Positions 7,199-44,878 of a stretch of DNA of 64,000 nucleotides are shown in pieces (the first letter of the stretch is position 1; every line of letters starts with the position of its first letter). The notes under the pieces are model-generated. The model had not been told where the DNA came from. It did no database searches and worked only from the letters and a program-made list of their open reading frames with translations. The position numbers and the translations under genes are program-made. Location of the stretch: positions 1 through 64,000 of the IMG/VR virus record IMGVR_UViG_3300012988_000016. One strand, given 5' to 3'.

Positions 7199-7224
7199 AC
7201 CCAATAAGCCTAACGGCTTGATCG

Positions 7225-7262
7225 AAAACGCCTCCAGGGTTATCTCTGGGGGCGTTTTTCTT
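7225..7262 (+). terminator. Intrinsic terminator after the capsid gene
   Basis: AAAACGCCTCCAGGG-TTAT-CTCTGGGGGCGTTTT stem-loop followed by a T-rich tract. Confidence 0.85.
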
Positions 7263-7299
7263 TGGAGCTTAAGTCACCGTTATGCTACGATGTGAGATC

Positions 7300-25301: not shown

Positions 25302-25655
25302 ATGGCCTTAAATAATGCTCTTTACTCTCAATCTGCTCAGACGATCTCTTCTACTGAGTACAGCCTAACCGCCAACTCTACCTCTTTAGCTACGGTCACA
25401 ACTGTAGCAGTGATATCTGTGTGGATCGATGTCAATGCTTTAGCAGCTGGTGATGAATTTGAACTAGCTATACTTGAAAAGGCTGTAAGCGGCGGCACCC
25501 AGAGAAGAATGGTCATTGCCACTTTGGTGGGGGCTCAAGCTGACCCCCTGTTCGTCACAGCAGGGTGGCAGGTGGGAGTAGGTTGGGACGTCACTCTGAA
25601 GAAGATTGCTGGAACTGACCGCGCCTTTTCTTGGACAATACGATCGATTAGCTAA
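25302..25655 (+). CDS. Small beta-rich structural protein
   Basis: Coupled to both neighbours. Confidence 0.65.
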   Translation: MALNNALYSQSAQTISSTEYSLTANSTSLATVTTVAVISVWIDVNALAAGDEFELAILEKAVSGGTQRRMVIATLVGAQADPLFVTAGWQVGVGWDVTLKKIAGTDRAFSWTIRSIS

Positions 25656-28600: not shown

Positions 28601-29791
28601 ACTGCGGATGCGGTAACCCTATCGGATTCTCCCCTTGTATCTCTGTTTTCTGAAAAGGCCGCCTCTGATACGATTCAGGCCACAGATCAAAATACACTCT
28701 CGCTAGAGTTCGGCCGATTCCTGGTTGATTCAGTGACAGTGTCCGAGCAGTTGGTTCCAGACACCAGCTATGTTCGCCCTGTTTCTGATGCGATCGTTGT
28801 TTCAGACCAGAGCTCAATCTCCTCGGTCTACGAAAAGACGATTCTGGACACAATCTTCGTTGTGGATAGCCGTGCCGTAAGTTTGGACCAGAACCGGTCA
28901 AACAATGACGTCATCAGCTGTCTGGACCAGTGCACCCTGGCGTCTGAATACGTCAAAGTACTTCAAGACAGCATCCAGCTAGCTGAACAGCTGATCCCGT
29001 CTACCGACTACATCCGAAGCATCGCTACGGATTTGATCGACACCACTGAGCAGTTGATCGTTGAGAATGAGCGGGGGACAGTTGTTGAAGACGCCCCCAT
29101 CAGCGTCTCTGACGCGCTGTTGGCCGAAACTTCGTACCGTAGGTCAGCTTTTGACGCCTTGGACATCTCTGAGGTCTTGCTAGCGGAGACCCAGTACGTC
29201 AGAGACACTCAGCCGGACTCTATCAGCTGTCTGGATGGAGCTGAGGCTGCTATCGAGACCTTCCTTAACTTTTTGGATGACCTTGAGGTTTCGGATCAGA
29301 TCGTCATCTTCACCGAATCCAATTTCTCAATCGTCGAAGATGATGGGATTACGGTGTTCGACGACACGATCGTCAGAATCCTTAACAATGGGGTCGGTCC
29401 CAGCATCTCGGCGGATACTAACGCTGTCAAACGCTTCCGGTACATGCAGCAACTTCAGCGTGGGGACCTCTGTATCAGGACTTCAGATGCGACGGGTCCG
29501 TATGGGCCGGCGGCGGTCTATTACCGGCTCTACCAGATTTCTAAGTCTGGGGCCCCTATGATGGTAGGAGGGCGTCAGAAAGCTGTCAATGGGGCTGTAG
29601 GGGAGTTCTACGTCATAGGTTTGGCGGGTGAACACGGTCAACCAGGCGAATGGTTGATCAGATGGGAAATCCAAGATTCGGCTCAATCACCTATCCAGAC
29701 GGTGGACCAACGATTCCTGGTTTTGGATGCTTTGGCGTTGAATCCCAATGGGGGTTTTCCGCCTAGAGTCAACAAGTATGGTTGGGAATGA
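25655..29791 (+). CDS. Giant Ser/Thr/Asp-rich repeat protein (putative fibre/whisker) with a C-terminal Ig-like domain
   Basis: Dozens of SDTxSxTDS-type repeats; globular C-terminal region of about 100 aa similar to the N-terminus of 29830..30720. Confidence 0.8.
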   Translation: MSWSFGFVLFGEGVLPSTIDVVTSTDSIAVTDIGFNPYLQLSDTVAVTSSAVIEFFDGNVIAITDSSVADFPTTSAIDRSASDTVAVTDSATLQNVFDRSSSDTLVVTEDVVWDLYFNVDSISTSDSTLRSLEYNRSVSDTVSVTDSESNQVDKTLSDSVTLTDSTVASREYSILLGDTVSVTDAESNLVDKGVSDSIALTDSITVTLGTLIDISLSTDTIATTDAANTSMVFNVSANDTVSTTDSTVVEFIISVIDRSGNDSIAVTDSIFEERFLEVAASDTASITDSIVVSATYERASNDTVATTSSAVLEFYDGNQVTITDSSVADFPVTGVIDRSASDSISITDSATLQNVFERLPSDTIVVAEDLVWDLYRPADTITLTDANTLSVEYGRSVSDTVSVTDAESNQVDKGVSDSIALTDSAALSIEYGRTGSDSIAVSDQIQRETSFPQDSVSVSDTAVISLEYSRSANDTLTVTDNVSIGQTIDTALSTDSAALTDSTLLSIEYGRLVSDTISTSDSILVSAEFGRLLSDTCSIAEQTFIEKTFPQDSVTVTDSTIVGSEYSVIGSDAIVLSDSIQTSSQFDRTIQDSIVTSDFAFPEIESALTDVISILDTSATSIEYGVSTSDSILITDQTLREKTFPQDTVSVTDQTTLSSVYSLTASDALSIIDDVSATTSQSIDLFLNDSITVTDLTSTSSEYAKSLSDTLAATDQGSTEVTFNRTLTDSILTSEQLLVEKTFISDVVTLVDSQSTSLEIGVLASDTIQVSDQTLREKTFPQDAILVSDSLVLSSQYQRYLADTLQILDDVSATASQATDLFFNDSIVVTDQTLLSSVYSLTISDSLAILDSTVVDVQSTSSDTISVSDAVTAGLEKALALSDSVTTADSFLLGFEYGRNPIDSIVLADQTIPSIDKDRSASDTISTSDSFLRSLEYGRLLSDSISLTDSSIVDLFQGLSVFVADSAVITDQLIPSTDYIRLTADAVTLSDSPLVSLFSEKAASDTIQATDQNTLSLEFGRFLVDSVTVSEQLVPDTSYVRPVSDAIVVSDQSSISSVYEKTILDTIFVVDSRAVSLDQNRSNNDVISCLDQCTLASEYVKVLQDSIQLAEQLIPSTDYIRSIATDLIDTTEQLIVENERGTVVEDAPISVSDALLAETSYRRSAFDALDISEVLLAETQYVRDTQPDSISCLDGAEAAIETFLNFLDDLEVSDQIVIFTESNFSIVEDDGITVFDDTIVRILNNGVGPSISADTNAVKRFRYMQQLQRGDLCIRTSDATGPYGPAAVYYRLYQISKSGAPMMVGGRQKAVNGAVGEFYVIGLAGEHGQPGEWLIRWEIQDSAQSPIQTVDQRFLVLDALALNPNGGFPPRVNKYGWE
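25778..26926 (+). repeat. Internal 372-nt (124-aa) duplication: 25778-26149 and 26555-26926
   Basis: DTVAVTSSAVIEFFDGN...NQVDKTLSDSVTLTDS vs DTVATTSSAVLEFYDGN...NQVDKGVSDSIALTDS. Confidence 0.9.
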
Positions 29792-29829: not shown

Positions 29830-30720
29830 ATGTCGGTAGCATTTTACAAGGGTCAGCAATTGGGTTCCAAGGACCTTGACATTTGCCTAGCAAATGCGTC
29901 GGACTACCCTATCAATGCGGCTGAAATATCCTACGCTCTATACGACCTGACCACTGGCAAAGAAGTGTTGCTGGGAGTACCCCGCAGAGATCCGGCCAAC
30001 GATTCGGTCGGACATTACTATGCCAGTATCGTGATCCCCAAAGACGCTCGTATCGGAGATTACCGAATTCGCTGGGTATTCAGGGAAGTGGCGGGGGGTA
30101 AGATTCATCAGGTGGTGCAAGAATTCAACGTCATCGACGGGGCGGCCGGACCGATGGTGATCGTCCCCTGTTCAGAGATCGCGTTGGTGAGGAGTCTTCG
30201 GATCCTTCTCAGGGACAACAACCCTGACCGAAATTACCACTTTCGACCGCCTGCCCATGAGGAGACGATCACTCAGTTAAATCGAGTGTTCGGCTACATT
30301 TGGGAAGATGAGGAACTGGCTGAATACTTGCTCCGCTCTCTCGACATGGTGTCGGCTGCCCCTCCCCGTACCCCCATTCCTTCTTTTGACGCCCTGTTTC
30401 GAGACTACCCTGACTGGCGAACCTTGGTGATCAATGGGGCGATGATGTACGCCTTGCGGGCAGTTGCGATCAATTGGGTGGCAGATGAGTTTGGCTACAG
30501 TATTGGAGGAATCTCTCTAGATCTGGAGAAATCGTCCAAATACCAACAACTCTCCCAGGATGTCAAAGACTCCTTTGACAGCCAACTTGAGAAAGCTAAG
30601 GCGACGGTCAAGATCATCAAAGGTTTGCAGCAGCCCCGATACGGGATCGGTATTCGGAGCTCGTTTGGGCCGTATGTGGGATCAGGTGTGTTGAGCCCAC
30701 GAAAGTTCGTCGGATTCTGA
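29830..30720 (+). CDS. Head-tail adaptor (neck) protein with an N-terminal Ig-like domain
   Basis: RSLRILLRD...IWEDEELAEYL...YSIGGISLD resembles the SPP1 gp15/HK97 gp6-type adaptor pattern. Confidence 0.65.
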   Translation: MSVAFYKGQQLGSKDLDICLANASDYPINAAEISYALYDLTTGKEVLLGVPRRDPANDSVGHYYASIVIPKDARIGDYRIRWVFREVAGGKIHQVVQEFNVIDGAAGPMVIVPCSEIALVRSLRILLRDNNPDRNYHFRPPAHEETITQLNRVFGYIWEDEELAEYLLRSLDMVSAAPPRTPIPSFDALFRDYPDWRTLVINGAMMYALRAVAINWVADEFGYSIGGISLDLEKSSKYQQLSQDVKDSFDSQLEKAKATVKIIKGLQQPRYGIGIRSSFGPYVGSGVLSPRKFVGF

Positions 30721-30799
30721 ACTATTACACTTTAGATGTAATTCGCTTCATAAGGCGAATGCCTTCTAGCTGAGGTGGGGCTGGTGTAAGTTACCGGCC

Positions 30800-31090
30800 A
30801 TGGACATCAAGACGTGTGCTTGTGGTCAGGTGTTCTCCTCTTTTAGAGTGTTGGCAGCTCACCACAAGGACTGCACTGTGTGGCAGGATCAATTGGGTCA
30901 GTGTGAAATATGTAAGCGGCGCCACTATCGCCATGTACAGGTTTGCCCAAATGAAGGTGAGGACCGCAATCGTCGGCGCCTCATTGAGAAACATGGTATA
31001 CCTCAAGGCCTGTTCGAGGATTGTTTGCGAGAACTGAACAAACAATACTCGGACGGCCGCCTCAAATCAAAGAGAGCCTATGACAACTAA
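30800..31090 (+). CDS. Small zinc-finger protein
   Basis: CACG...HHKDC; CEIC...H...C. Confidence 0.65.
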   Translation: MDIKTCACGQVFSSFRVLAAHHKDCTVWQDQLGQCEICKRRHYRHVQVCPNEGEDRNRRRLIEKHGIPQGLFEDCLRELNKQYSDGRLKSKRAYDN

Positions 31091-31370
31091 GAAGAATCTG
31101 ACGACAGAGGACCCTGTAGAACCTTCTACTTTGGAGGAATTGCGTAGTTTGCAGGAGGCTAGAGCAGGGATTGCCGACAACTTGCTGTCGCTGGAGCAAG
31201 AACGGATCCAGTTGTTGGCGGCGGCCCGAAAGGTTGACGATCAACGCACTCGACTTTTCGAGAAATGCTTGATTGATCGTGGGCTGAGCAGCAATACGAT
31301 TGCCGAGATAGATGCCAAGACTGGCAAACTGTTGGTGATTCAGACGACCGCTAGTCCCCCGAAGACCTGA
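31080..31370 (+). CDS. Small coiled-coil protein
   Basis: Heptad LEELRSL...LLSLEQERIQLL. Confidence 0.7.
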   Translation: MTTKKNLTTEDPVEPSTLEELRSLQEARAGIADNLLSLEQERIQLLAAARKVDDQRTRLFEKCLIDRGLSSNTIAEIDAKTGKLLVIQTTASPPKT

Positions 31371-31411
31371 TTTTTTTATCAGATGGCTGAATGGAGAGGT
31401 GCCATTCAGCC

Positions 31412-32767
31412 ATGCCTTACGCTTCAAATCGAGACCGCGATCCGCCTACACTCGAATTGGTGAAAGTTGCTGAACCCGCGGCACCTCTCAACCTTTTCAT
31501 GACGAGTGGGTATCAGCCGGGGGTGGTAGACCTATCTTGGACGGACCCTTCCCAACTTTCGGTCAACAGTAATTTCCAGATCTGTGGGGTCAACATTTAT
31601 CGGAGCTTTGACTCCGAATTTGGCCCCTACGATAGGATCAACCCCTATCCTCTGGGCGGCACGTTTTGGCGAGATCAGACCAACAATGTGTTGGTTCAGG
31701 ATGAGCAGGTTACCGATTGGGTAATGTTTGGGGATGCGGTAGCCGCGCAAAGAAACGCTCCTCGATACGTCTTTAGGACTAGTTTTGGCCCGATCGTCAA
31801 GGAGGGTTCTCAAAACATCCCCGCCAACACACCCTCTGACGTTGAGGTGAGAATTGATGGGATGGTGGCCCGAGTGGCCCGAGTGACGGGTGAGACGTGG
31901 GAGGTGGAGATAGACCCCAATCCCTATCCAAACGTCACCACTCAGCTGATGGACCCTGGGATCGTTCCAGGCCCTGACAGTGTGGTGACGGTCTCCTATC
32001 GGTACAACAGGTCTTTCGTTAGAACAGACCTGAGTCAGCGTATCTTCTATCGTGTCACCACCGTGGGGACGATGCTTAGCACACTTGCTGGCCCAGCAGA
32101 TCCTCATGAGCTGTTGGAGACGCAACTTGCCCGAGCCACTCTCACCAGCACCTTCGAATTAGAGAAGGTGGATTGGGTGTGGCGGGAAGCGGTTCGTCGG
32201 AATCGGTGGATTCTTGACCAGGGTGGGGAGCGGGTCAAAGTTTTCATTCGGAAGCAGGTTGGGCCTGTTTGCCCTTGCTTCAATACCCTCACCCATCACC
32301 AACCTGTAAGTGACTGTACCATCTGCTATGGGGTGGGCGTCATAGGCGGGTATGAAGGGCCGTACGACATCATCCTCGCCCCTGACGATGCGGAACGGAA
32401 GATAGGTCAGCGAGACACAGGCCGCACAGTAGAGCACTCGTACGAGGTCTGGACGACATCCAGTCCGTTGCTTTCTCAGCGAGACTTCATCGTCAAGATC
32501 AACGGTGAGCGATACAGTATAGGTCCAGTCAGGATGCCCTCCAACCGAGGTATGTTGCTACAACAACATTTCAACATAGGTCATCTGGACGAGAAGATGA
32601 TCCAGTACAGAGTTCCGATTGACGGGCCGAATCGCTTCTTGCCCAACCAGGCGGCTGAACTGGTGCCTCCTCTAAACTCTCCCGCTCAGATCACTGATAA
32701 GCCTGAGATTCCGGATGAACGGGAACTAAAAGGCCGCACCAAAACATGGGTTAACATCGTTTACTGA
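31412..32767 (+). CDS. Head closure/neck protein with an FN3-like N-terminus and a Cys cluster
   Basis: PAAPLNL...VDLSW...NIYRS (FN3-like); CPC...CTICYGVG..GGY typical of large-myophage head-closure proteins; GGAGAGGT RBS before ATG 31412. Confidence 0.65.
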   Translation: MPYASNRDRDPPTLELVKVAEPAAPLNLFMTSGYQPGVVDLSWTDPSQLSVNSNFQICGVNIYRSFDSEFGPYDRINPYPLGGTFWRDQTNNVLVQDEQVTDWVMFGDAVAAQRNAPRYVFRTSFGPIVKEGSQNIPANTPSDVEVRIDGMVARVARVTGETWEVEIDPNPYPNVTTQLMDPGIVPGPDSVVTVSYRYNRSFVRTDLSQRIFYRVTTVGTMLSTLAGPADPHELLETQLARATLTSTFELEKVDWVWREAVRRNRWILDQGGERVKVFIRKQVGPVCPCFNTLTHHQPVSDCTICYGVGVIGGYEGPYDIILAPDDAERKIGQRDTGRTVEHSYEVWTTSSPLLSQRDFIVKINGERYSIGPVRMPSNRGMLLQQHFNIGHLDEKMIQYRVPIDGPNRFLPNQAAELVPPLNSPAQITDKPEIPDERELKGRTKTWVNIVY

Positions 32768-33264
32768 TGATCGCTCTACCCAAAATACGTATCAATTACA
32801 AGCCCTTGGTACCCAAAGGAGCACTCGATAAGTTTGAGCCCAAGAAGGTATTGAAGTCCCTTCAACGTCAAATCCTCGAAGAAATACGACGAGAGATTGA
32901 GGAATACGCCTTTTCCCCTAGAGCCAAGAGGGCTTTGAAGAAGGGTCTGAAGACCAGAATCTACGAGAGCAGCCTCATAGTGACCGCCACTCACCCCGCT
33001 TTCTTCCCCTTGTTGGAGGGGCGCAAGAGGGAACAAATGACTTGGCTGACCAAGGCTAGGCGGCCCATTCCAATCATCCTCGATACAGGAGAACTGATCT
33101 TTAGGTCCGCCACCCCCAGATCGATGGCTAGGGGTCGATGGTATCACCCTCGACGAGAATCTACCCATATTATCGACAAAGCGAGAGATGCTGCTCGAAC
33201 CGTCATCAAGAGACGTCTGGTGAGAGCGCTCCAGAAAACCCTACAAGATACCCTAAAGAGATAA
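32767..33264 (+). CDS. Neck/tail completion protein (HK97 gp10-like position)
   Basis: Very basic, 165 aa; WYHP..ESTHIIDKA resembles the gp10-like HPG...P.F end; directly follows head closure. Confidence 0.55.
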   Translation: MIALPKIRINYKPLVPKGALDKFEPKKVLKSLQRQILEEIRREIEEYAFSPRAKRALKKGLKTRIYESSLIVTATHPAFFPLLEGRKREQMTWLTKARRPIPIILDTGELIFRSATPRSMARGRWYHPRRESTHIIDKARDAARTVIKRRLVRALQKTLQDTLKR

Positions 33265-33265
33265 A

Positions 33266-33868
33266 ATGAGCGATTCAGGCGGAGTTTCAGTCGTGTGTCT
33301 GACTATGGGTGGGCACTTTGTACCAGACATCAAGGTCGATATCCCCCATCGAGAGCAGATCTTCATAAAGATGGAGGACTACCTCAGATCGAGAGACCTT
33401 CATCGAGCCATCAATTCTGGGATCGTTTTTAAACTAGACACGGTGACCGTACGTCAACCAGTGGAGTCTGCCGTGGATATTGAGAGAATGGCCCAGCTGG
33501 AACTAGAGAACGCTCGCCTCAAAGAGGCTCTGGAACGGGCCAATAAGGTCAACTCAGACCTACATTCGGGGATGGCCAATCTCCAGCAACAGATGACCAA
33601 CGTCCTGTCTGCTTTGGGGCGCATAGAAGCCGCCCCAACCACGACTATTGTGCAACAAGTATCTGGACCTGGGGGTTATGTGCCGGCAAGTCAGAATACT
33701 GGTCCAGTAAGCGAAGCGGTGGGTGGGGAGGCCCCCATGTTTCTCCCAGACCTGAGTCAGGACTTGGGGGAGGCCAGAATCCAAATCACTGAGCAAGTTA
33801 GTGATGGGGATGTCTCTGGACCAGCTTCTAAGCTCCGTCAACTACGTGGTGGCGGCAAGAAGAAGTGA
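33266..33868 (+). CDS. Coiled-coil protein with a basic C-terminal helix (putative actin adaptor)
   Basis: N-terminal small domain (SRDLHRAINSG), heptad coiled coil, disordered linker, ends ASKLRQLRGGGKKK. Confidence 0.7.
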   Translation: MSDSGGVSVVCLTMGGHFVPDIKVDIPHREQIFIKMEDYLRSRDLHRAINSGIVFKLDTVTVRQPVESAVDIERMAQLELENARLKEALERANKVNSDLHSGMANLQQQMTNVLSALGRIEAAPTTTIVQQVSGPGGYVPASQNTGPVSEAVGGEAPMFLPDLSQDLGEARIQITEQVSDGDVSGPASKLRQLRGGGKKK

Positions 33869-33903
33869 TTCTTCTTTTGATTCGATCAGCCTAGGGTAAG
33901 CCT

Positions 33904-34551
33904 ATGCTGAAGCGAATTGCACAAGACCCCCATCAGGAGAACATTCGTGTAGTCTGGCACGAACCTACGCAATTCGATCATTTGCGGCACGGCCCTCCCT
34001 ATCTGCCAAAATCCTATGAGGCTGTAAAGCTTGGTAAGGATCAAAGACTCGAAGTCAAACAGATCGTCAGGACCTCGGCGGTCAAGATGGCTGGTGGGGG
34101 GACGATGCTTTCGATGTTGGCCATGCTTCAGGCGTTGGCTTTGCTTCATCAAACTCATCACTGGAGCACCTCAGGGGTTAGCTTCAGTGGGGACCACTTG
34201 CTTTTCGAGAGACTCTACAACGAGTCTCTCGAACTTATTGACCAATTGGCTGAACGGATCATTGGGTCGGGAGATTCAACCACCATCACTGCATTCGAAC
34301 AAGCGACCGTTATGGCGGACTTGTTGGTTGCGTTGGGACCGGTCAAATCTCCCGAGGACATGGTTCGCATCAGTCTGGGGGCCGAGGCCACGTGTGTGAC
34401 TGCCATTTCTCAACTGATTGCCACCATGAAGGCAGCCGGTACTCTGAGTCACGGTATCAGCAAACTGTTGGAAGACATTGCAGATAAGCACGAGACCTTC
34501 GTCTATCTGCTCAAGCAACGTTCTCAAACGGAGACCTACGATTTCCGTTGA
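33904..34551 (+). CDS. Dps/ferritin-like protein with an N-terminal extension
   Basis: HQTHHW...GDHLLFERLYNE...IDQLAERI and IADKHETFVYLL match the Dps ferroxidase signature. Confidence 0.8.
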   Translation: MLKRIAQDPHQENIRVVWHEPTQFDHLRHGPPYLPKSYEAVKLGKDQRLEVKQIVRTSAVKMAGGGTMLSMLAMLQALALLHQTHHWSTSGVSFSGDHLLFERLYNESLELIDQLAERIIGSGDSTTITAFEQATVMADLLVALGPVKSPEDMVRISLGAEATCVTAISQLIATMKAAGTLSHGISKLLEDIADKHETFVYLLKQRSQTETYDFR

Positions 34552-34571
34552 AAAAACCAAAGGTAAAACAC

Positions 34572-35600
34572 ATGAAAAAAGATGAAGGTAAATCTGTCAG
34601 TCTAGGTGTCGGTCTGGACATTGGTACCATGAACATCGTTTCCGCCAGATCGAAAGATGGTGGCGTGGTGACCAAGCGAGTGCGTGACGCCTTTTTGGAC
34701 TTAGAACTAGCTGCAAAGCGTAGCTTGAAAATGTCCAAAGTCGACTACGTGGAACGTGAGACAGATGGAGCCTTGTTGGTGCTGGGTGATTCGGCATTGA
34801 CGATGGCCAATCTGTTCAAGCGTGAGGCTCGACGGCCCCTCAGCCGAGGCTTGATTGCCGCTGGCGAAATCGACGCTCAAGAGGTGTTGGGGCTGCTGAT
34901 CAATCAAGTGCTGGGCGATCCCCAGGAAGACGGTGAGCACTGCTTCTACAGCGTGCCAGCGGCCCCGATCGACGACCCCTCTCAGGACGTGATTTTCCAC
35001 ACAGAAGTCTTCCGTAAGATCGTCCGAGACTTCGGCTACCACGCCCATCCGATGAATGAAGCCATGGCAATCATCTACAGCCAGTGTGCCGAGGAGAACT
35101 TCTCCGGCTTGGCGGTCAGTTTCGGTGCGGGTATGGCGAACATTGCCCTGTCCTACCAGGCCAACAAGGCCTTGGATTTCGCTCTAGCGCGAGGTGGTGA
35201 CTGGATTGACGCTCAATCGGCCAAGGCGCTTGGAAAGACAGCTTCTCAGATGTGCACCATCAAAGAGAAGGGGATCGACCTCCGTAAACCCAATGGTCGT
35301 GAAGAACAAGCGATCGTTCTCTACGTCAGGAGCCTGATTGACTACACCCTTCAGAATGTGGCGGCACAGTTCAAGAAGGTGAAGAACGACATCGCTCTAC
35401 CAGACCCAATTCCGTTTGTCGTTTCTGGCGGCACCACCAAAGCGGGCGGCTTCCTCGATATTTTCAAGGAAGAGTTCGAATCTCACAAGAAGCGCTTCCC
35501 GATCCAGATTAGCGAGATCCGTCTCGCCAAGGATCCGATGACCGCTGTGGCGGAGGGCATGCTGGTACTCGCCTCTGAAGAACACGAATCAGATAAGTAA
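34572..35600 (+). CDS. Actin-fold ATPase (volactin-like)
   Basis: GLDIGTMNI (phosphate 1), MNEAMA (connect 1), VSFGAGMANI (phosphate 2), VVSGGTT (adenosine), DPMTAVAEG (connect 2). The start could extend to TTG 34548. Confidence 0.9.
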   Translation: MKKDEGKSVSLGVGLDIGTMNIVSARSKDGGVVTKRVRDAFLDLELAAKRSLKMSKVDYVERETDGALLVLGDSALTMANLFKREARRPLSRGLIAAGEIDAQEVLGLLINQVLGDPQEDGEHCFYSVPAAPIDDPSQDVIFHTEVFRKIVRDFGYHAHPMNEAMAIIYSQCAEENFSGLAVSFGAGMANIALSYQANKALDFALARGGDWIDAQSAKALGKTASQMCTIKEKGIDLRKPNGREEQAIVLYVRSLIDYTLQNVAAQFKKVKNDIALPDPIPFVVSGGTTKAGGFLDIFKEEFESHKKRFPIQISEIRLAKDPMTAVAEGMLVLASEEHESDK

Positions 35601-35614
35601 GGGAGAGTGGGCCA

Positions 35615-36754
35615 GTGTACTACAACTTGGTAGGACCCCTGAAGCGGCGAGTCATCCTTGAACTGAAGGACAGCTTTTCGAATCATCCTGTCTACAACAA
35701 GATCGTTCCGTTCATTCAGAACCGATTCTCGTTTGAGGAACGTCCTCAATTCGGGATCGTCATCAAGGGGTCCAGTACCAATAAGGTGCAGCTGGCGGCG
35801 GACAACTACGTGGGCACTGTTCAAAGCCATGTAATGTTGGCCTATGTGGGGCAACCTGAGTATCCTTTGGAATGGGTAAGAGAGGATTCTAGGGTAGTGA
35901 CCAAGAATGGGGGGATGCCCACTCCTCCTGGGGTCTATTTGATGGAGATCCTGACTGCTCCTACGGTCAACGGTGAAGACGGCTTCTTCGTCATCGATCC
36001 TATGTATACGGTAATCGATCGTCCCTTGATCGTCACTAGAGCGGGCATGACAGTAGACGCTCAATTGGAAAACCTGCCGCTTCAGAATACGTTGCGGCTC
36101 TATGCCAACAACTCTTTCTTTCTCAAAGAGGGGTTGGACTATACGGTAGATTACGATACCGGTAGGGTTACCTTCATCACCATCTTGCCAGCCAACACAC
36201 AGGTGTCGGCGGACTATAGGTGGGCAGGAGAATCGATAGGGCCAGTGGCGTTTCAGTGGAATCAAGCCAATTGGACCACTCTTCCAGGGGTAGTGTTGGC
36301 TTTTGGGAAAAGGTCCGCCCCAAAACAGAAGGTGGCGGTGGTGGTCTACCAGGATCGAATCGATGCTGCCGAGGCGTACGGCGGGAAGTTCGAAGTCAGT
36401 TTTGACTTCGATGTGATTGCCAGGGATCCGATGCAGATGGAGGAGATCGCAGATCTGACCACCATGTATCTGTTGGCTGACAAGAAGAGTCAATTGGAAT
36501 TCGAAGGAATCGAGATCTTAGATGTCTCGATGGGCAGCGAGGCTGAGGAAATAGCAGATGAGACGGGAGAGAACTTCTTCTACCAAGCCTCTATGTCGCT
36601 GCAATTGAGAGCTGATTGGGAAGTGCACGTGCCGCTTCCATTGGTGATTAGCAAGATTAATTCCGGAGGTATCACTCCTGTTGCTTCCGACGTGTTGTTC
36701 AGAACACACCCTATTCTTCAGAGAAGAGATGATGATTATGAGAGGATCGGCTGA
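35615..36754 (+). CDS. Tail completion/terminator protein
   Basis: Precedes the sheath; C-terminal FEVSFDFDVIARD...YQASMSLQLRADW beta pattern fits tail terminators. Confidence 0.55.
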   Translation: MYYNLVGPLKRRVILELKDSFSNHPVYNKIVPFIQNRFSFEERPQFGIVIKGSSTNKVQLAADNYVGTVQSHVMLAYVGQPEYPLEWVREDSRVVTKNGGMPTPPGVYLMEILTAPTVNGEDGFFVIDPMYTVIDRPLIVTRAGMTVDAQLENLPLQNTLRLYANNSFFLKEGLDYTVDYDTGRVTFITILPANTQVSADYRWAGESIGPVAFQWNQANWTTLPGVVLAFGKRSAPKQKVAVVVYQDRIDAAEAYGGKFEVSFDFDVIARDPMQMEEIADLTTMYLLADKKSQLEFEGIEILDVSMGSEAEEIADETGENFFYQASMSLQLRADWEVHVPLPLVISKINSGGITPVASDVLFRTHPILQRRDDDYERIG

Positions 36755-37173
36755 TGCCTAAGTTCAGTTTTGAATGTGCCTGTAGCACACAATTCACCCG
36801 CACCCTAAAGATGGGGGACCATGCGACTCATGAGTGCCCTGCTTGTGGAGCTGAGGCCCCTAGACTTTGGGAAACCTTTGGGTTTGATTTCGCCAAAGGA
36901 GGCAAGTCACCTGCCAATTCAGGAGTATCGAAGCACGATTATCCAACAGCTGACAGGGTGGTAGGAGTTGATGCTGAGTCCAGGTGGAAGGATCAAGCTG
37001 CTAGGGAAGTGGTCAAGTCCAAGGTCAGGAAACAGGTGGGGACCCACGCTTTGATTCGAAAGAATGGTAAAGACTTCATCGATTACGAGGGCGGTACTCC
37101 CGAACTGATCGAACGTCGTAAGAATTTGGCTCAAGAGGTGAGAACCATTCAGGCCAAACAAAAAGACGAGTGA
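36754..37173 (+). CDS. FmdB-family zinc-ribbon protein
   Basis: MPKFSFECAC...CPACG...RL. Confidence 0.8.
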   Translation: MPKFSFECACSTQFTRTLKMGDHATHECPACGAEAPRLWETFGFDFAKGGKSPANSGVSKHDYPTADRVVGVDAESRWKDQAAREVVKSKVRKQVGTHALIRKNGKDFIDYEGGTPELIERRKNLAQEVRTIQAKQKDE

Positions 37174-37284
37174 CCTCACTACTCCTCTTGTTTCCACGTT
37201 CTAGGTAGAACCAGATTGAGATTTAGACCCAAAGCGCCCCTAGATATGATGTAAAAACAAAAACCCTAATCAATTCGAGGCTTT

Positions 37285-40200
37285 ATGGCGATCGGCCCCT
37301 ACTCAACTTACGTTCCCCCTGGCGTCTACACCCGTACATTGTCGGATGCCAATGCTGCAAATCTGGTAGTTGGTCTTAAGATCCCAGTGGAAGTTGGGGT
37401 GGGTCAAGAGGAATTGACTCAATCCGATTACGAATTGGTGCGTGGTTCTAGCGCAGGACTGGATCAGCAGATCATCAATGAGGATGTGAGCGCCAGCTTC
37501 GTTGTGGATGACTCGAACCCCAACCACCCTATCTTGGGTTTGGCGAATGGGACATCAACACAGTTCATCGTCAGAAACGCTCCCATTGTGACGGGGCAAG
37601 GGATTGGGAAGATCTCTAACGACATCAAGACCCTCTCGGTGACGATCAACGGCGTCCCAGTAGCGGTAGGGTCGGTTCAGGGTGCAAGTGGATCGGTGTT
37701 TCTCCAGATCCCGCCCCAACCAGGAGACAACGTTCGTTGCACCTATTGGTTCCATCGTTCGGACACGAGTTTCACGGATGATGTGTCGAACCAGGTAACC
37801 ACAGTAGCCGCGTCATTGACCACACCAGGTTACGCTCCTTTCCAGGTTGTGACTGGTTTGACCGATACTTTCGTGTTCTCGGTAGATGGTACGCCCAAGA
37901 CGTTGGTCTTTGGGGCAGGTAGCTACACAGCCGTTGGCCTCAAGAGTGTGATCGATGCTGCGGCCGTGTCAGGCTTGGCTGTGTCGGTTTCGACTGACGG
38001 TCAGGGACGTGACCACCTCACCTTCACAGCTGCCCGCTCATTGTCGATCGGTGGTGGTAACGCGAACGGTGTGCTGGGTTTCTCGCCCAACACGAACACG
38101 AACCGTAACGCTACCTTCCGCGTATTTCAGCGTCCAATCGTAGACGGTACGGACGGCGGTATCACCACCACAGACCCGACTAAGGTTGTGGCGGTGGTCA
38201 ACAATGTCCAAGTGGTGGTGTCGGCTGTCGACGGTACGAACGGTTTGGTCACCCTGCCTTTCGCTCCAGCAGCTGGGTCGACGGTGAAATTGACCTACTT
38301 CGCCAACACCTGGCAGGACACATTCGACTACTTGCCCAACACACTGGTGACGGACGTGATCCGTTGCGGTTTCGCGGCAGGTCGTAACGACTACATTCAA
38401 GGCCAAGACTTCGTGGTCTCGAATCCGAGCCCGGACGTGTCGATCATCCACTGGGGCAGCAGCTTCGTTGTTTCTTCGGCTCAACACACCAGTGGCACTA
38501 CCCCCTTCAATGAGGTTCAGATCCTCCCCACCTTGGTGGATGATCGTCTCTTCTCGGTGGAAGCCACACGTGTCGTGGATACGACGGTCATCCCTGCTTT
38601 GGTGTCTTCGAACCAATTCCTCCTACCTGAGGTGCCGACCACAGGTAACGGACGTGACACGCCCCTTGGGGCAACGGTCTATGGTGCAGTATCGAACGGC
38701 CGCAATGGTCTGGATACCAATCGTCCTGACTTGGTGACGGTTCACACTGGCCGAGATTTGGTAGATGCGCTGGGCCGTGCGGCGGCGGTGGTGACGGTGG
38801 TTGATGGGGAGAATCGCAAGATCACTCTCAAGAACCCTGTTCCCCCGGATCACAAGGCGTATGCGACTTTCTGGTACAGCCGTTTGACGGATGACACGTT
38901 CATCCTGACCAACAAGGTGACGGGTCCGGTTGGTACGGGTCAGTTCGAAGTGCTTGATACCACAACAGGCAAGAACCTTTATCAGGTTCGCTTCGGAACC
39001 AAGTCTGGCCTTTCTGAGATTGTTCAATGGCCTCGCGGTTCAGAACAAGTGACGGACGGCTTCCACACGGGCGCCGGCACTCCTGTTGCTGAAACAGTCA
39101 CTGTGACGTTTGGGTCTACTTTGGCCGAAAATGCCATCTATACCAACCTAGGAGCAGCTCCTTACTCGTTCTTCCAGACCTACAGCAATAACTGGAGAAC
39201 CACCATCAATGGTAACGCCCTAGTTACCAACTTGACCACAGCTGTGCCGGCTTACTTGGTGTCAGCCAGAACCCCCACCAGCGGATCGAATTCGATCACC
39301 ATTCCAGCCTCTCCCGCCAATGTTTTCAACATTACGGTCGATGGCGTGAATGTGGCGGTGACATTGACGGCTGGCGCTAGAACACCAACACAAATTGTTG
39401 GTGAAATCAATGCAGCGATTGATGCCAACGGCGCTTTCAGCGGCACCGCTCCCAACACCTTGGCAAGTTTTGTTCAGGTGAACGGTACAAACGGTGATGT
39501 GTTCTTCGTTATCAAATCGTACACTACTCCTGGCGCACTGCCTGGTGGTTTTGATAACGCATCTACTGTGGCGATTCGTCAAGGTACGGTCGAGAATGTG
39601 CTTGGATTCAGCACCTTCCAATCGGCTCAAGGCACTCCCACAGCCACCAACAAGCCAGCCACCATGTTGGGTGGTATTGCAGGGCCGTTCAACATCACCT
39701 CTGGTGTCAACGATGTGTTGACCTTCCGTCTAAACGGAATCGACTACACCACGACCTTGCCAGCAGGTGCCGCGGTTACGGCTTCTTCAGTGGTGACCGC
39801 CATCAACAGCACCCCTGGTTTGACAGGTGTTGCTTCAGCGGGTACTTTGGGCAACCTGAACAAGATTCGTCTAACCAGCACAGTGGCGGATCCAAGCTCC
39901 AGCATTGTGATGTTGGATGGTTCGGCCAACGATGTGTTGGGCTTCCTTGATGATGCGACAGCTAGCCAAACACTAGTTGCGGCTTCTGAGGTGGTGGATG
40001 CCCTAAACGCTACCTCAGGCTTCTCGGCCCGCGGTGTGGCGTACGTCAGCACCATCAATGGCTCACAGTATGTGACCATTGAGTCTCTGACGGTCGGTGC
40101 TGCAACATCAAGCATCGTATTTGTCAGTGGTTCGGCCTCGGCCTTCAACCCCACTACTGGAACTGGAATCGTTCCAGGAACTAGCGGTGACAATGGTGCT

Positions 40201-41550
40201 GATGCTCAGGACAAGTTCACTGTCAGCTCGAACAATGCAAGCGGTTCGGCTGGTTCTGGTATCCCAGGTCAGACCTACACAGATGCAAGGACGGGGCTAC
40301 GTTTCACCGTACTGCCTGCCACAGACGGCAGCTACACTTCTTCAGGCTTCTTTACCTTGGAAGTGTCCCCAACCTGGAAGGTCAATCCAGCAGTTCCGTA
40401 CTTGTCGCTTCCAGGTTTGGAAACGGTGGTTACCGACACGGTTGGTATTGGGGTGAACGACACCGCTACTGTCAACACTTTCAATCCTTCTGGACTGGAA
40501 CCAGCGATAGGCGACTTCTACTTCGTCACCTACAATTTCAGGAAGCAGGACTTTTCGACCAAACTTTATCAACAGTTCAAGACTGTGGAGGCCAATTTCG
40601 GGCCTCTCTCGGCTGAGAACAAGGTAACGTTGGGTGCCTACCTGATGATCCTCAACGGAGCCGTGTTGGTGGGTATCAAGCAGGTGCTGAAGGTTCAAAA
40701 CACCAATCAAGCTAGCGATCAAGACTTCATTGAAGCGATCAGTGAGCTTTCGATCCCTCTGCCTGGTAACGTCAAGCCGGATGTGTTGGTGCCTCTAACG
40801 GGAAGCAGCACGGTTTTCGCGGCCCTCATGCAGCACTGTGAAATTCAGTCTAATGAGCGCAACCAGTCAGAACGCATGGGCTTCGTCGGGTTCTCGTCGG
40901 GCACCACTCCAACCACTGCTCAATCGGTGGCCAGGAGCTTGCTCTCGAAGCGTATGATGGCTTTCTACCCCGACAGTGCGGTCATCACGCTTTCGGATCA
41001 GTTGGGTGCCAGCTACGAGACTTTGGTGGATGGTTCGTTCATCGCGGCCGCTATTGCGGGCGCGGCTTGTTCACCAGCCGTCGATGTGGCGACTCCCTAC
41101 ACCCGTCGTCGCATCCAAGGGTTCACCCGTATTCCTCGGATTTTGGATCCGATTACGGCCAATCAAACGGCGGTCGCTGGCATCACTCTCTTGGAGGACT
41201 TGGATCCTTTGATCCGTATCCGCCAAGGTTTGACGACCGATATGTCGGACATCTTGAAGCGTCTGCCGACCGTCACTCAGATTGGCGACTACGTTCAGCA
41301 GCAAAGCCGCGTAGCTCTGGACAGCTTCATCGGTACCAAGTTCCTCGCTAGCCGCACTAGTGAGGTTGAGGTCTCGATGACGGCCCTGTTCAAGCAGTTG
41401 GTTCAAGCTGAGATCGTCGGTGGTTGGATGGGGATCTCGGCCACCATCAACCCCATCGACCCGACGGTTATGGACTTCGAAGCTTGGTACCAGCCAATCT
41501 TCCCGCTCTTGTACATCCAGATGACGTTCTACCTCAGAGCTCGCATCTGA
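37285..41550 (+). CDS. Contractile tail sheath protein with large insertions
   Basis: N-terminal PPGVYT; sheath-type C-terminus (RMGFVG...FYP...AGITLLE...IRIRQGLTT...FIGTK...FEAWYQPIFPLLYIQMTF); 1421 aa. Confidence 0.92.
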   Translation: MAIGPYSTYVPPGVYTRTLSDANAANLVVGLKIPVEVGVGQEELTQSDYELVRGSSAGLDQQIINEDVSASFVVDDSNPNHPILGLANGTSTQFIVRNAPIVTGQGIGKISNDIKTLSVTINGVPVAVGSVQGASGSVFLQIPPQPGDNVRCTYWFHRSDTSFTDDVSNQVTTVAASLTTPGYAPFQVVTGLTDTFVFSVDGTPKTLVFGAGSYTAVGLKSVIDAAAVSGLAVSVSTDGQGRDHLTFTAARSLSIGGGNANGVLGFSPNTNTNRNATFRVFQRPIVDGTDGGITTTDPTKVVAVVNNVQVVVSAVDGTNGLVTLPFAPAAGSTVKLTYFANTWQDTFDYLPNTLVTDVIRCGFAAGRNDYIQGQDFVVSNPSPDVSIIHWGSSFVVSSAQHTSGTTPFNEVQILPTLVDDRLFSVEATRVVDTTVIPALVSSNQFLLPEVPTTGNGRDTPLGATVYGAVSNGRNGLDTNRPDLVTVHTGRDLVDALGRAAAVVTVVDGENRKITLKNPVPPDHKAYATFWYSRLTDDTFILTNKVTGPVGTGQFEVLDTTTGKNLYQVRFGTKSGLSEIVQWPRGSEQVTDGFHTGAGTPVAETVTVTFGSTLAENAIYTNLGAAPYSFFQTYSNNWRTTINGNALVTNLTTAVPAYLVSARTPTSGSNSITIPASPANVFNITVDGVNVAVTLTAGARTPTQIVGEINAAIDANGAFSGTAPNTLASFVQVNGTNGDVFFVIKSYTTPGALPGGFDNASTVAIRQGTVENVLGFSTFQSAQGTPTATNKPATMLGGIAGPFNITSGVNDVLTFRLNGIDYTTTLPAGAAVTASSVVTAINSTPGLTGVASAGTLGNLNKIRLTSTVADPSSSIVMLDGSANDVLGFLDDATASQTLVAASEVVDALNATSGFSARGVAYVSTINGSQYVTIESLTVGAATSSIVFVSGSASAFNPTTGTGIVPGTSGDNGADAQDKFTVSSNNASGSAGSGIPGQTYTDARTGLRFTVLPATDGSYTSSGFFTLEVSPTWKVNPAVPYLSLPGLETVVTDTVGIGVNDTATVNTFNPSGLEPAIGDFYFVTYNFRKQDFSTKLYQQFKTVEANFGPLSAENKVTLGAYLMILNGAVLVGIKQVLKVQNTNQASDQDFIEAISELSIPLPGNVKPDVLVPLTGSSTVFAALMQHCEIQSNERNQSERMGFVGFSSGTTPTTAQSVARSLLSKRMMAFYPDSAVITLSDQLGASYETLVDGSFIAAAIAGAACSPAVDVATPYTRRRIQGFTRIPRILDPITANQTAVAGITLLEDLDPLIRIRQGLTTDMSDILKRLPTVTQIGDYVQQQSRVALDSFIGTKFLASRTSEVEVSMTALFKQLVQAEIVGGWMGISATINPIDPTVMDFEAWYQPIFPLLYIQMTFYLRARI

Positions 41551-44600: not shown

Positions 44601-44878
44601 TCGTCAAACCAGGGGAAGAACCACCACCTCCAGAGGAAGTGGAGCAAAAGTTGGAAGACGAGCGTCGTCTGGCTTACGTGGCGATCACGAGGGCAGCGAA
44701 GAACTTGACGATCGTCTGCCCCAGTAGTGTGGGTGGCAAGGCAGGCGGAGTTAGCGAATTCGTGTACGAGGCCGGCCTCAACTTGGGTCAAAATATCAAG
44801 CCGGCAGAGCCTAATGAAAAGCAAGCTTTCGACGTAAGCAATGTTGATTGGCAACCTCATGATGGGATGGATGCCTGA
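41687..44878 (+). CDS. uvrD: UvrD/PcrA-like SF1 helicase with an N-terminal extension of about 270 aa
   Basis: AGAGSGKT, HIIVDEAQD, VGDDKQAINSFQGA, TNYRC, HSTKG and ERRLAYVAITRA motifs. Confidence 0.93.
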   Translation: MERWAETSEDELIGEFQVAEYLIFLFALDTYLRYSEETTGQDQLEGDTIRKGVTILRLADHSLDSIKSYLDNHLPSPTHKMMLNRAINISISTANGVARRALQFRTLLSRGGPSTMKGIFDTTKYIRQVREAISASMLEDADRALDIFAALPMRNTRMRAWIDLAAKVAGSGEAAPSAVDAGSREAGETSTELVIHQVQQIAASGADESLKSQEAQAELLDTVEREATNAARRSLEINSQSDEPPTRSEVVGVAVAAATAAMSDPSKPQNIPTPLRRLDDEQRAAALTDGKVRVAAGAGSGKTSTVVARVEYLIKERRVLPSRILVTSFNNKASEELKERLGKAVGGESLQQMSVGTMHSLFKRFIGEYGTNAEKVTMGQLKNGPNGFIGDGKKIGYAVQNIWEDCYGKQKPIPKLQSVLLLKAQWAGNHVTPLEAAAKARSSSERDAALWYEMYEGLKGSIPGWKPVCHSKSYESFMTKVRPNNIPLGDFSDMLSTFLKILKREPRVQITIQKMYDHIIVDEAQDRNSVMKEVLDLCAGHVTDGSDGKSYWVVGDDKQAINSFQGARSELFINMGEEDGWKTRSIRTNYRCEPELVDAANKLIAHNKGQIEMESVPNPQKVRGSGSIQVVTPMDEAGAALGVVEGIKQNLVLGANVTDHAVLTRTNKELHAYETACIIRGVPYARKGASSFLGSPETTALLGYVQLVTGSDFTKMQKALGNAINKPRRFFLTDPKKAPEAVEAALSAYARQRDVDVKSINPMTALQDRSFVRHLVDALAKLTRSGKAFKFEEKIEDLAQSLQEMKALTTDPDYTTKNLFDDILGLKGTGIVGGAFVEQSFRESLQADLKNSTSADDDEAVDEDDEEDSTQGLGNISFLYQLALPDPTDEDDELNPPTTPMGFKQKMERYASKMKDLRTDITKWYKEQSALPPEKRSPPPGVYLGTCHSTKGAQWPTVFVAMPAGKFPMVPIVKPGEEPPPPEEVEQKLEDERRLAYVAITRAAKNLTIVCPSSVGGKAGGVSEFVYEAGLNLGQNIKPAEPNEKQAFDVSNVDWQPHDGMDA

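Follow-up and report, generated by a model that had tools for sequence, protein, structure and literature searches.

A volactin-family actin gene and its candidate adaptor gene among the neck and tail genes of a huge bacteriophage

A huge bacteriophage was found to carry, among its neck and tail genes, a gene for an actin-fold protein of the archaeal volactin family, together with a partner gene whose product is inferred to link an actin filament to a cargo. The analysis covered a 64,000-nucleotide stretch of DNA (the window), which is part of a 309-kb huge-phage contig (IMG/VR record IMGVR_UViG_3300012988_000016). The observation made in the initial annotation, that a volactin-like actin gene and a coiled-coil gene lie together in the virion neck region, was confirmed. 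Its interpretation, that the pair is an actin cytoskeleton with a ParR-like adaptor that positions or transports proheads or tails or segregates genomes, was only partly supported. We found no paper describing volactin-type actins in phages.

Assignment of the actin gene to the volactin family

The actin gene is an open reading frame on the + strand that begins at 34548 (TTG) or 34572 (ATG) and ends at 35600, and it encodes 342 aa, or 350 aa if the TTG is used. The ATG at 34572 is preceded by AAAGG about 8 nt upstream. Six family-specific strings noted in the initial annotation are all present: GLDIGTMNI (34611-34637), RRPLSRG (34830-34850), YSVPAAPID (34947-34973), NEAMAIIYS (35055-35081), SFGAGMANI (35118-35144) and ARGGDWID (35187-35210). 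The adenosine motif, VVSGGTTKAGGF, lies at 35418-35453. To determine if the protein belongs to the volactin family, it was compared with the Pfam profiles. The match to Volactin (PF25216) was far beyond chance (E 1.7e-73; 248.3 bits against a cut-off of 35), covered positions 3-321 of the 321-position profile, and was the only Pfam hit above its cut-off. All of the top 120 homologues carry PF25216. A tblastn search showed 38.5% identity over 330 aa (E 1.5e-74) to volactin orthologues of Haloferax gibbonsii, marisrubri and massiliensis. In contrast, PHROGs and NCBIfam contained no family for the protein.

The initial annotation had named best matches to Hsp70 or sugar-kinase proteins as a result that would refute its reading. 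A family profile searched against the PDB matched MamK (4e-14), MreB (6e-7) and FtsA (2e-5), all polymerising actin-fold proteins, with a weak additional hit to EutJ (E 0.003). No Hsp70, sugar kinase or ParM was found among the Pfam or PDB profile hits. The similarity to solved structures is remote, as a single-sequence search of the PDB returned nothing at E<=1. These results support assignment to volactin rather than to MreB, FtsA or ParM. The actin-fold nucleotide-binding motifs (phosphate 1, phosphate 2, adenosine and the connects) were located in the sequence and align with those of MamK. Across 49 family representatives, G18, T19, E163, G185, G187 and G286 were invariant, and D16 and G287 were nearly so. 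The phosphate-2 motif (SFGAGM) has Ser where most actins have Asp. This substitution, which may bear on hydrolysis, is found throughout the family and is shared with Haloferax volactin.

To place the phage actins within the family, a quick maximum-likelihood tree of 120 sequences was built. The tree is unrooted, and its sampling was biased by the degenerate DNA motif (FGAGM...GDWI) used for the genome scan, which samples only part of the family. The actins of the huge-phage clade to which the window belongs (clade 1) formed a separate clade (99*), beside the archaeal (98*) and Planctomycetota (100*) clades, and were not nested in the archaeal volactins. A second huge-phage clade (clade 2) carries a 30%-identical homologue in a different gene context. 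The huge phages that carry this actin as a strictly conserved core gene are found in many environments, with more than 1500 protein clusters at 90% identity on contigs of up to about 620 kb, and some relatives carry inteins in three different conserved actin motifs.

Arrangement and conservation of the surrounding genes

The genes from 31391 to 37173 form a tightly packed, same-strand run in which neighbours are separated by at most 35 nt. The first (31391..32767, +) encodes a conserved 458-aa candidate virion structural protein with a Cys-rich motif, which matched phrog_2806 (E 1.3e-5) and phrog_1004, a virion structural protein family (E 2.9e-4); a single-sequence PDB search with it gave nothing useful. 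The second (32767..33264, +) encodes a conserved 165-aa protein that returned no hit in Pfam, PHROGs, NCBIfam or a PDB profile search, and a neck role for it is only a positional guess. The 200-aa candidate adaptor follows (33266..33868, +) and is separated from the actin by a gene (33904..34551, +) for a 215-aa Dps/ferritin-like protein (PF00210, E 1.4e-10; phrog_3636; weak matches to NCBIfam DpsA models).

The gene immediately downstream of the actin (35615..36754, +) encodes a 379-aa protein with a predicted phage-neck (tail terminator/gateway-like) fold. Its AlphaFold2 model (pLDDT 80), compared with the PDB by Foldseek, matched the necks of phage 812 (9.8e-8) and E217 (7.5e-5), as well as those of Bas63, Pa193, Sf14, XM1 and Pam3. 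By sequence it matched the phrog_123 tail terminator only weakly (E 0.003), and neither single-sequence nor profile searches of the PDB found anything useful. It is followed by a 139-aa zinc-ribbon protein (36754..37173, +; PF09723, E 1.2e-6, below the gathering score) and by a 1421-aa protein (37285..41550, +) that is only tentatively assigned as sheath-like. The latter has an N-terminal PPGVYTRT motif of a kind typical of sheath proteins, but Phage_sheath_1C was matched in 1 of 13 homologues (E 0.0015), DUF2460 was matched in 11 of 13, and neither a single-sequence PDB search nor a PDB profile search with the C-terminus returned a hit. Further away, a head protease (2750-4297) and a major head protein (6317-7198) lie upstream, and a baseplate hub/lysozyme (59416-61593) lies downstream. 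The actin thus sits, as the initial annotation stated, between neck-side genes and a protein of neck/terminator fold followed by a sheath-like protein. This position is weak evidence for a structural role, however, because a UvrD helicase (41687-44878), the Dps-like protein, a methyltransferase/glycosyltransferase and homing endonucleases are embedded in the same region. A promoter and terminator scan gave counts at or below shuffled expectation.

To determine if this arrangement is conserved in related phages, further loci were compared. The order 458-aa gene, 165-aa gene, candidate adaptor, (Dps-like gene), actin, 379-aa gene, zinc ribbon and ~1400-aa sheath-like gene was collinear in 16 IMG/VR loci and in LR745208.1. 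The actin was present upstream of the 379-aa gene in every one of the further loci with enough sequence, and in more than 70 clade-1 loci its position never changed. The median identity of the actin across clade-1 loci was 65%, compared to 29-62% for its neighbours, which makes it the best-conserved gene of the block. These results indicated that the actin is a core gene of a large huge-phage clade. The Dps-like gene is a variable insert. It is absent from LR745208.1, where the start of the actin gene overlaps the end of the adaptor gene.

The candidate adaptor and its C-terminal module

The initial annotation described the 200-aa protein as a small N-terminal domain, a long coiled coil, a disordered linker and a basic C-terminal helix, and the AlphaFold2 model showed this architecture. 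A folded N-domain of four strands and two short helices (residues 5-57, pLDDT about 90; 33278-33436) is followed by one long coiled-coil helix (residues 70-121; 33473-33628), a disordered stretch (residues 121-183) and a short C-terminal helix (residues 184-194) over SKLRQLR. Conserved motifs include APMFLPD (33731-33751) and a C-terminal module (33776-33853). The protein was found by HMM in all 77 clade-1 loci that include this region. An alignment-based protein search returned only 31 relatives, all on huge contigs and none annotated, and NCBIfam contained no matching family. Relatives within clade 1 that had lost either the actin or the adaptor were sought and none was found, but every gene of the block is co-conserved there, so co-occurrence does not single out the adaptor. 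The start of the adaptor gene abuts or overlaps the stop of the 165-aa gene in all loci, a coupling at least as tight as that of its end to the actin.

To determine if the 200-aa protein resembles the partners of cellular volactins, an HMM of its tail was searched against cellular sequences. The last ~27 residues matched a repeated module (...EG..V..A...LR.LR...) in the tail of the DUF7139 membrane protein encoded just upstream of volactin in Halobacteria (HVO_2016-type, CdpA-like), with E-values down to 8e-5, and this protein accounted for 33 of the top 40 hits. The tail HMM gave 25 hits at E<0.05, compared to 0 for the reversed profile and 0-1 for ten column shuffles, indicating that the motif is order-specific. 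With the full adaptor HMM, the top 10 of 4363 cellular ORFs were all the gene just upstream of the actin, against a background rate of 3.7%, and these partners were from Halobacteria and Planctomycetota. The N-domain weakly matched the actin-adjacent partner in Brocadiia-type Planctomycetota (E 0.005). These similarities are short and the individual E-values are modest (8e-5 to 0.05), and the reverse search, with the haloarchaeal tail against phage ORFs, ranked the adaptors first but only at E 0.17-5. HVO_2016, which is CdpA-like with 4 TM, has been noted to lie adjacent to volactin and is suggested to anchor the cytoskeleton (PMC12126565). The results gave independent support to the proposal that the 200-aa protein is the partner of the actin and acts through its C-terminal end, although for binding of the actin by the C-terminal helix this support is only indirect.

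The proposed resemblance to ParR was not supported. The protein is not ParR-type by homology, as its beta-rich N-domain has no ribbon-helix-helix fold and Foldseek gave no PDB hit below E 0.6. Only chance-level two-copy repeats of 12-13 nt were found in 30700-37400, with no tandem array that could act as a centromere. In clade 2 the neighbours differ, and the ~80-aa protein encoded upstream of the actin showed no homology to the adaptor by hhalign (probability 0.2), so that any likeness (a small beta N-terminus, an acidic linker and a conserved W-x-I-P-D-F end) is at most analogous. In one further actin locus, L124, a protein of the same architecture (coiled coil, FIPP motif and C-terminal helix) ends exactly at the actin start, with none of the window's neck genes detected nearby. 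Although the order of features is the same, the full adaptor HMM matched this ORF only at E 2.3, which is not significant.

Interpretation of the actin and adaptor pair

The explanation we favor, with moderate confidence, is that 33266-33868 and 34572-35600 form a two-gene actin-plus-adaptor module of the volactin family, carried as a core gene set by a clade of huge phages. The analysis itself establishes that the actin is a bona fide member of the volactin family of predicted ATPases under strong purifying selection, that the 200-aa protein always accompanies it in the clade, and that this protein shares its C-terminal module with the haloarchaeal membrane protein and, more weakly, its N-terminal domain with the Brocadiia-type partner. 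Filament formation, ATPase activity, adaptor-actin binding and the cargo are inferred from sequence and predicted structure alone. In this view, the actin would polymerise with ATP into dynamic filaments, as Haloferax volactin forms in vivo, where filament tips touch the membrane (PMC10869688); such filaments have been shown only for H. volcanii volactin. The adaptor would oligomerise through its ~50-residue coiled coil, bind the filament through its amphipathic C-terminal module, the element common to the phage and archaeal partners, and bind something else through its N-terminal domain, which archaea replace with a four-helix membrane anchor. Because the module sits in a packed run of neck and tail genes, it is most likely expressed late and would organise virion morphogenesis in space, for example by positioning heads, tails or their joining. 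The cargo is the least certain step.

Phage-encoded cytoskeletons are known from only a few systems, namely PhuZ tubulin, AlpC and the ParM-like proteins of plasmid prophages. The pair offers a clonable two-protein system with which to ask whether very large virions need spatial organisation by actin filaments, and a candidate actin-binding peptide shared with HVO_2016 that makes the anchoring of volactin filament tips at the membrane directly testable. It is also evidence that the volactin family spans archaea, Planctomycetota and phages. A broader and more doubtful reading is that volactin-type actins come with an ancient cognate partner recognised through a short C-terminal module shared by haloarchaeal membrane anchors, planctomycete coiled-coil proteins and huge-phage adaptors. 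In huge phages, the pair would then build an actin-based assembly line that brings filled heads and tails together or positions them. This would be the actin counterpart of the PhuZ spindle, as the initial annotation also proposed, and a core function of at least one very large and widespread huge-phage clade.

The strongest alternative, which is possible but less likely, is that the same filament and adaptor do not serve virion assembly but position replicating phage DNA or a replication compartment, as AlpAC of prophage CGP3 or PhuZ do, or remodel host cell shape, size or membrane to accommodate a huge virion, their place among neck genes being incidental. Known phage cytoskeletons act on DNA or a replication compartment (PMC4446434; PMC7950403), and cellular volactin acts in cell-shape transitions (PMC10869688). 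In addition, non-structural genes are embedded in the region, a DNA-protecting Dps-like gene sits between adaptor and actin, and in clade 2 and L124 the actin is not next to recognisable neck genes. However, the position of the actin is invariant in clade 1, no DNA-binding fold was detected in the adaptor by Foldseek, and no iterated repeats lie nearby.

It is improbable that the 200-aa protein is an ordinary morphogenetic protein, such as a neck whisker/fibre, scaffold or assembly chaperone, that belongs with the 165-aa gene and shares the C-terminal motif by convergence. Its coupling to the 165-aa gene and the Dps-like and other inserts that often separate it from the actin are consistent with this view. 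Coiled-coil proteins with basic C-terminal helices are common among phage scaffolds and whiskers, and a Foldseek search of BFVD gave weak matches to small uncharacterised phage proteins, including a DUF2635 protein (E 3e-3 to 5e-2). Against this view are the order specificity of the motif, its selection of precisely the actin-adjacent gene in two cellular phyla, the gene overlap in LR745208.1 and the arrangement in L124. It is very unlikely that the actin-fold protein does not polymerise and instead acts as an ATP-driven chaperone or enzyme (Hsp70-, EutJ- or sugar-kinase-like) for neck or tail assembly. The Ser in phosphate 2 and the weak EutJ hit are compatible with this possibility, and polymerisation is inferred for every phage member, but the best PDB relatives are filament formers, Haloferax volactin has the same motif variant and forms dynamic filaments in vivo, and the protein is highly conserved across its whole length, as expected for a polymer with many contacts. 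A ParMRC-like (type II) partition cassette maintaining the phage genome as a plasmid prophage was rejected, since only the adaptor-then-actin order and the C-terminal helix recall ParR/ParM, while the actin is not of the ParM family, the N-domain has no ribbon-helix-helix match, no iterated repeats were found between 30.7 and 37.4 kb, and the genes lie among late-type structural genes rather than beside replication or lysogeny genes.

Among characterised systems, the closest is volactin (VolA, HVO_2015) of Haloferax volcanii with the adjacent HVO_2016 (PMC10869688; PMC12126565), which shares the Pfam family, the phosphate-2 motif and the tail module in the partner. The phage partner has a small soluble N-domain and a coiled coil in place of the four-helix DUF7139 membrane domain, and the phage genes lie among virion genes. 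ParMRC, Alp7AR and AlfAB share the adaptor-then-actin gene order and an adaptor with a short C-terminal helix proposed to bind the actin; ParM-family membership, a ribbon-helix-helix domain and centromere repeats were not found here. AlpC and AlpA of Corynebacterium glutamicum prophage CGP3 are likewise a phage-encoded actin-like filament protein and a co-transcribed adaptor that links a cargo to the filament, but AlpAC are early genes and AlpA binds phage DNA at its own promoter (PMC4446434), whereas the present pair sits among late-type neck and tail genes, showed no DNA-binding fold or repeat array, and has an actin assigned by profile to a different family. PhuZ, a tubulin-fold rather than actin-fold polymer, is also a phage-encoded cytoskeletal protein conserved across a clade of very large phages, in which it positions the phage nucleus and delivers capsids (PMC7950403; PMC8314001).

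Identity and distribution of the volactin-family actin

The region around the actin gene was matched at 100% identity by two IMG/VR huge-phage contigs, one of which is 308,895 bp. All large ORFs in the region are on the + strand and are tightly packed. The actin ORF at 34572-35600 encodes a 342-aa protein and is preceded by an AAAGG about 8 nt before its ATG, although it could alternatively start at a TTG at 34548, which overlaps the stop of the preceding gene. The protein matched Pfam PF25216 (Volactin) over the whole profile (E 1.7e-73, 248 bits against a cut-off of 35), whereas PHROGs and NCBIfam contained no family for it. Each of the strings that the initial annotation had reported for this ORF (GLDIGTMNI, RRPLSRG, YSVPAAPID, NEAMAIIYS, SFGAGMANI and ARGGDWID) was present within it, and the observation of a volactin-like actin at this locus held.

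To determine if the protein belongs with the volactins and with actins of the polymerising kind, one genome per species was scanned with a degenerate DNA motif. The scan recovered Haloferax, Halorubrum, Haloarcula and many other Halobacteria, as well as Archaeoglobaceae, Thermoplasmata and many Planctomycetota. The Haloferax orthologues were 38.5% identical to the phage protein over 330 residues (E 1.5e-74). A profile built from 49 family representatives was then searched against solved structures, and found MamK (4e-14), an "actin family protein", MreB (6e-7) and FtsA (2e-5), with only a weak hit to EutJ and none to Hsp70 or a sugar kinase. Best matches to non-polymerising proteins of the latter types had been set beforehand as grounds for rejecting the assignment, and they were not found. 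One peculiarity of the whole family is that the phosphate-2 motif reads SFGAGM, with Ser where most actins have Asp. Haloarchaeal members share this motif, yet H. volcanii volactin forms dynamic filaments in vivo (PMC10869688). In a quick maximum-likelihood tree, the phage clade to which the protein belongs (clade 1) was monophyletic (99*) and stood beside, not inside, the archaeal (98*) and planctomycete (100*) clades.

To assess how widespread the family is, protein and genome collections were searched with the phage actin. A large protein collection held more than 1500 clusters related to the query, of which the best 120 were all annotated PF25216, on contigs up to 465 kb, and an exhaustive search of 50%-identity representatives gave 1041 clusters at E<=1e-3. 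Two GenBank huge-phage genomes carry the gene, LR745208.1 (485 kb, 56% identity) and LR756511.1 (595 kb, 30% identity), and the second of these represents another large clade (clade 2) with 112 IMG/VR relatives. Several phage homologues, the relatives designated P0121, P0122 and P0124, are interrupted by inteins at three different conserved actin sites, within SYG|GM (phosphate 2), within LAR|GDW and after GMTN, and these inteins carry Hint/Intein_splicing domains plus LAGLIDADG or HNH domains. Inteins typically lodge in conserved, indispensable sites. In the literature searched, no paper describing volactin-type actins in phages was found, the original volactin paper does not mention phages or viruses, and the huge-phage survey of 2020 mentions tubulin but not actin.

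Gene order and predicted functions around the actin

In all loci that were long enough, the gene order was 296 aa, two small ORFs, 458 aa, 165 aa, 200 aa, (Dps-like), actin, 379 aa, Zn ribbon and a ~1400-aa protein. A search seeded with the 379-aa protein recovered 256 relatives, and in each of the 80 retained loci with enough upstream sequence the actin lies just upstream of that gene. The actin is the best-conserved gene of the block, with a median identity to the sequence studied here of 65%, compared to 62% for the sheath-like protein, 56% for the 458-aa protein, 55% for the 379-aa protein, 50% for the Zn ribbon, 45% for the 165-aa protein, 38% for the Dps-like protein and 29% for the candidate adaptor, the 200-aa protein.

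To assess the function of the gene downstream of the actin (35615-36754), an AlphaFold2 model of the 379-aa protein was generated (pLDDT 80). The model matched neck proteins of phages 812 (9.8e-8), E217 (7.5e-5), Bas63, Pa193, Sf14, XM1 and Pam3, which agrees with a weak PHROG tail-terminator hit. A head protease and the major head protein lie upstream, and a baseplate hub lies downstream. The assignment of the 1421-aa protein (37285-41550) as a sheath protein is tentative, and the 165-aa protein had no match to a known family in the searches performed. Both the protein with the predicted neck fold and the sheath-like protein gave weak hits to the same Pfam domain, DUF2460 (11 of 13 sheath-like homologues, best E 2.4e-7), suggesting a shared inserted beta-domain.

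The placement of the actin among neck and tail genes in the initial annotation was thus essentially right, with the caveat that the region is a mosaic. A gene for a 1063-aa UvrD/Rep-type helicase (41687-44878) lies directly after the sheath-like gene, inside the tail gene region. A Dps/ferritin-like protein with a ~70-aa N-terminal extension (33904-34551) is encoded between the candidate adaptor and the actin, is conserved in most clade-1 loci but absent in LR745208.1, and may serve in DNA protection, iron handling or packaging with the genome. The major head protein gene (phrog_2522, E 3.9e-51) is followed directly by a free-standing LAGLIDADG/HNH-type homing endonuclease gene (together 6317-8229), and another HNH endonuclease VII-like gene lies at 19756-20439. 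A 623-aa fusion of a SAM-methyltransferase domain, a family-2 glycosyltransferase domain and TPR repeats is encoded at 21871-23742, whereas in one related locus, L006, its homologue sits right after the sheath-like gene instead. A 1378-aa protein (25655-29791) is built almost entirely of short degenerate repeats (about ...SDT[VI]x[VI]TD...), has only weak repeat-driven PHROG hits and is probably a fibre or decoration protein, and only its C-terminal part is conserved in relatives.

The candidate adaptor and actin-adjacent genes of cellular genomes

The 200-aa protein had no Pfam, NCBIfam or meaningful PHROG hit. AlphaFold2 predicted a confident small N-domain of four strands and two short helices (residues 5-57), one long helix (residues 70-121), a disordered stretch and a short C-terminal helix. 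Across the clade the sequence drifts to about 25% identity, but four features persist: the N-domain (DI..VPHG...RS.DL.RAI), the LE.EN..LRE coiled coil, a G(D/E)AP.F(L/I)PS motif and a C-terminal ...(V/L)S.AA..LRKLR.K end. An HMM found the gene in all 77 clade-1 loci that include this region, and its start always abuts or overlaps the stop of the 165-aa gene. In LR745208.1, which lacks the Dps-like gene, the actin start overlaps the end of the adaptor gene.

To determine if a comparable partner accompanies the family in cells, the genes next to volactin-family genes were examined in cellular genomes. In Halobacteria the upstream gene encodes a ~300-aa protein with four hydrophobic segments (Pfam DUF7139) and a cytoplasmic tail, and in Planctomycetota it encodes a ~200-aa coiled-coil protein. 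An HMM was built from the last 45 residues of 52 distinct phage adaptors and searched against all 4363 six-frame ORFs of the 120 cellular loci. The haloarchaeal upstream protein was returned again and again, with E from 8e-5 and 25 hits below 0.05, and two tail repeats were matched in each protein. The reversed profile gave no hit below E 1, and ten column-shuffled profiles gave 0-1 hits below 0.05. The aligned stretch is about 27 residues (R-I-x-V...S-E-G-x-x-V-x-x-A-x-x-x-L-R-x-L-R) and is not just an amphipathic helix. In L099 (1468-2370) and other haloarchaeal loci (among them L104, L116, L134, L142 and L167), the tail of the DUF7139 membrane protein holds two or three copies of a ~14-25-residue module (VDDAV.GL.GLRGG / TDDQAAAL.ELRKQ / ...VVDRIRGLF), and no paper describing this tail module was found in the searches that were run.

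When the full-length adaptor HMM was used, the top 10 of the 4363 ORFs were all the gene immediately upstream of the actin, 6 from Planctomycetota and 4 from Halobacteria, against a background rate of 3.7% for that position. For the Brocadiia-type partners it was the N-domain that matched (E 0.005, best reversed control 0.06), which is suggestive only. By position and architecture the haloarchaeal gene corresponds to HVO_2016, which a 2025 paper calls CdpA-like, noting its adjacency to volactin and suggesting a role in anchoring cytoskeletal systems. CdpA itself is the membrane anchor of the FtsZ ring, and a CdpA pull-down modestly enriched volactin (PMC12126565). Volactin filaments touch the membrane with their tips (PMC10869688). 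The simplest reading is that the shared C-terminal module is the actin-binding element, and that the N-terminal part, a membrane domain in archaea and a small soluble domain plus coiled coil in phages and planctomycetes, decides where the filament is attached.

Interpretation and comparison with other actin systems

Membership of the volactin family, conservation, synteny, the predicted neck fold of the neighbouring protein and the partner module shared with cellular genomes were established directly from the sequences and models. By contrast, ATP-driven filaments, which are likely, and binding of the adaptor to the actin through the C-terminal module, which is somewhat more likely than not, are inferences, as is late expression. 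A role in the spatial organisation of virion assembly is also inferred and is possible but doubtful, the main alternatives being positioning of DNA or of a replication compartment, or remodelling of the host cell. The interpretation in the initial annotation, a phage actin cytoskeleton with a ParR-like adaptor that acts during assembly, was supported in part.

The pair is not a ParMRC system, as there is no ParM membership, no ribbon-helix-helix domain, no Foldseek match for the adaptor and no centromere-like repeats nearby. It also does not resemble AlpAC in timing, which is inferred here, or in position, since AlpAC are reported to be early genes and AlpA to bind DNA (PMC4446434). Phage systems that pair an actin with an adaptor already exist (AlpAC and ParM-like systems), but the present one uses a different actin family, is a core gene of huge phages at a fixed place in the neck/tail block, and reveals a partner module shared with archaea.

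In phage clade 2 the neighbours of the actin differ. In this clade (L017 11780-12010 and loci L019-L098) a ~80-aa protein lies immediately upstream of the actin in 63 of 79 loci. It shows no detectable homology to the clade-1 adaptor, but it has a beta-hairpin-like N-terminus (TKDGEC.L.ITLDLNINLN), an acidic linker and a conserved W-x-I-P-D-F...K-x-x-F-G-K end, and may be an analogous adaptor.

Likely cellular fusion forms of the family were also found, in which the actin domain is fused to a Wzz/BY-kinase-like chain-length determinant (protein P0168), occurs in tandem (P0125), or carries long acidic or coiled-coil N-terminal extensions (P0138 and P0143). The nearest neighbour of phage clade 1 in the tree is an AT-rich contig, L124 (DAOVGR010000028.1, GC 26%), binned as Thermoplasmatales. 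None of the neck genes of the sequence studied here were detected there by tblastn, and the match to the adaptor HMM was not significant (E 2.3), but the contig has a 182-aa coiled-coil ORF with a DDIFIPP motif and a C-terminal SADLLSEIQKEKK that ends exactly at the actin start. L124 and the contigs L178, L100 and L163, binned into Thermoplasmatales, Chloracidobacterium and Patescibacteria MAGs, carry phage-like volactin genes, and L178 nests inside phage clade 2. These are probably mis-binned phage contigs.
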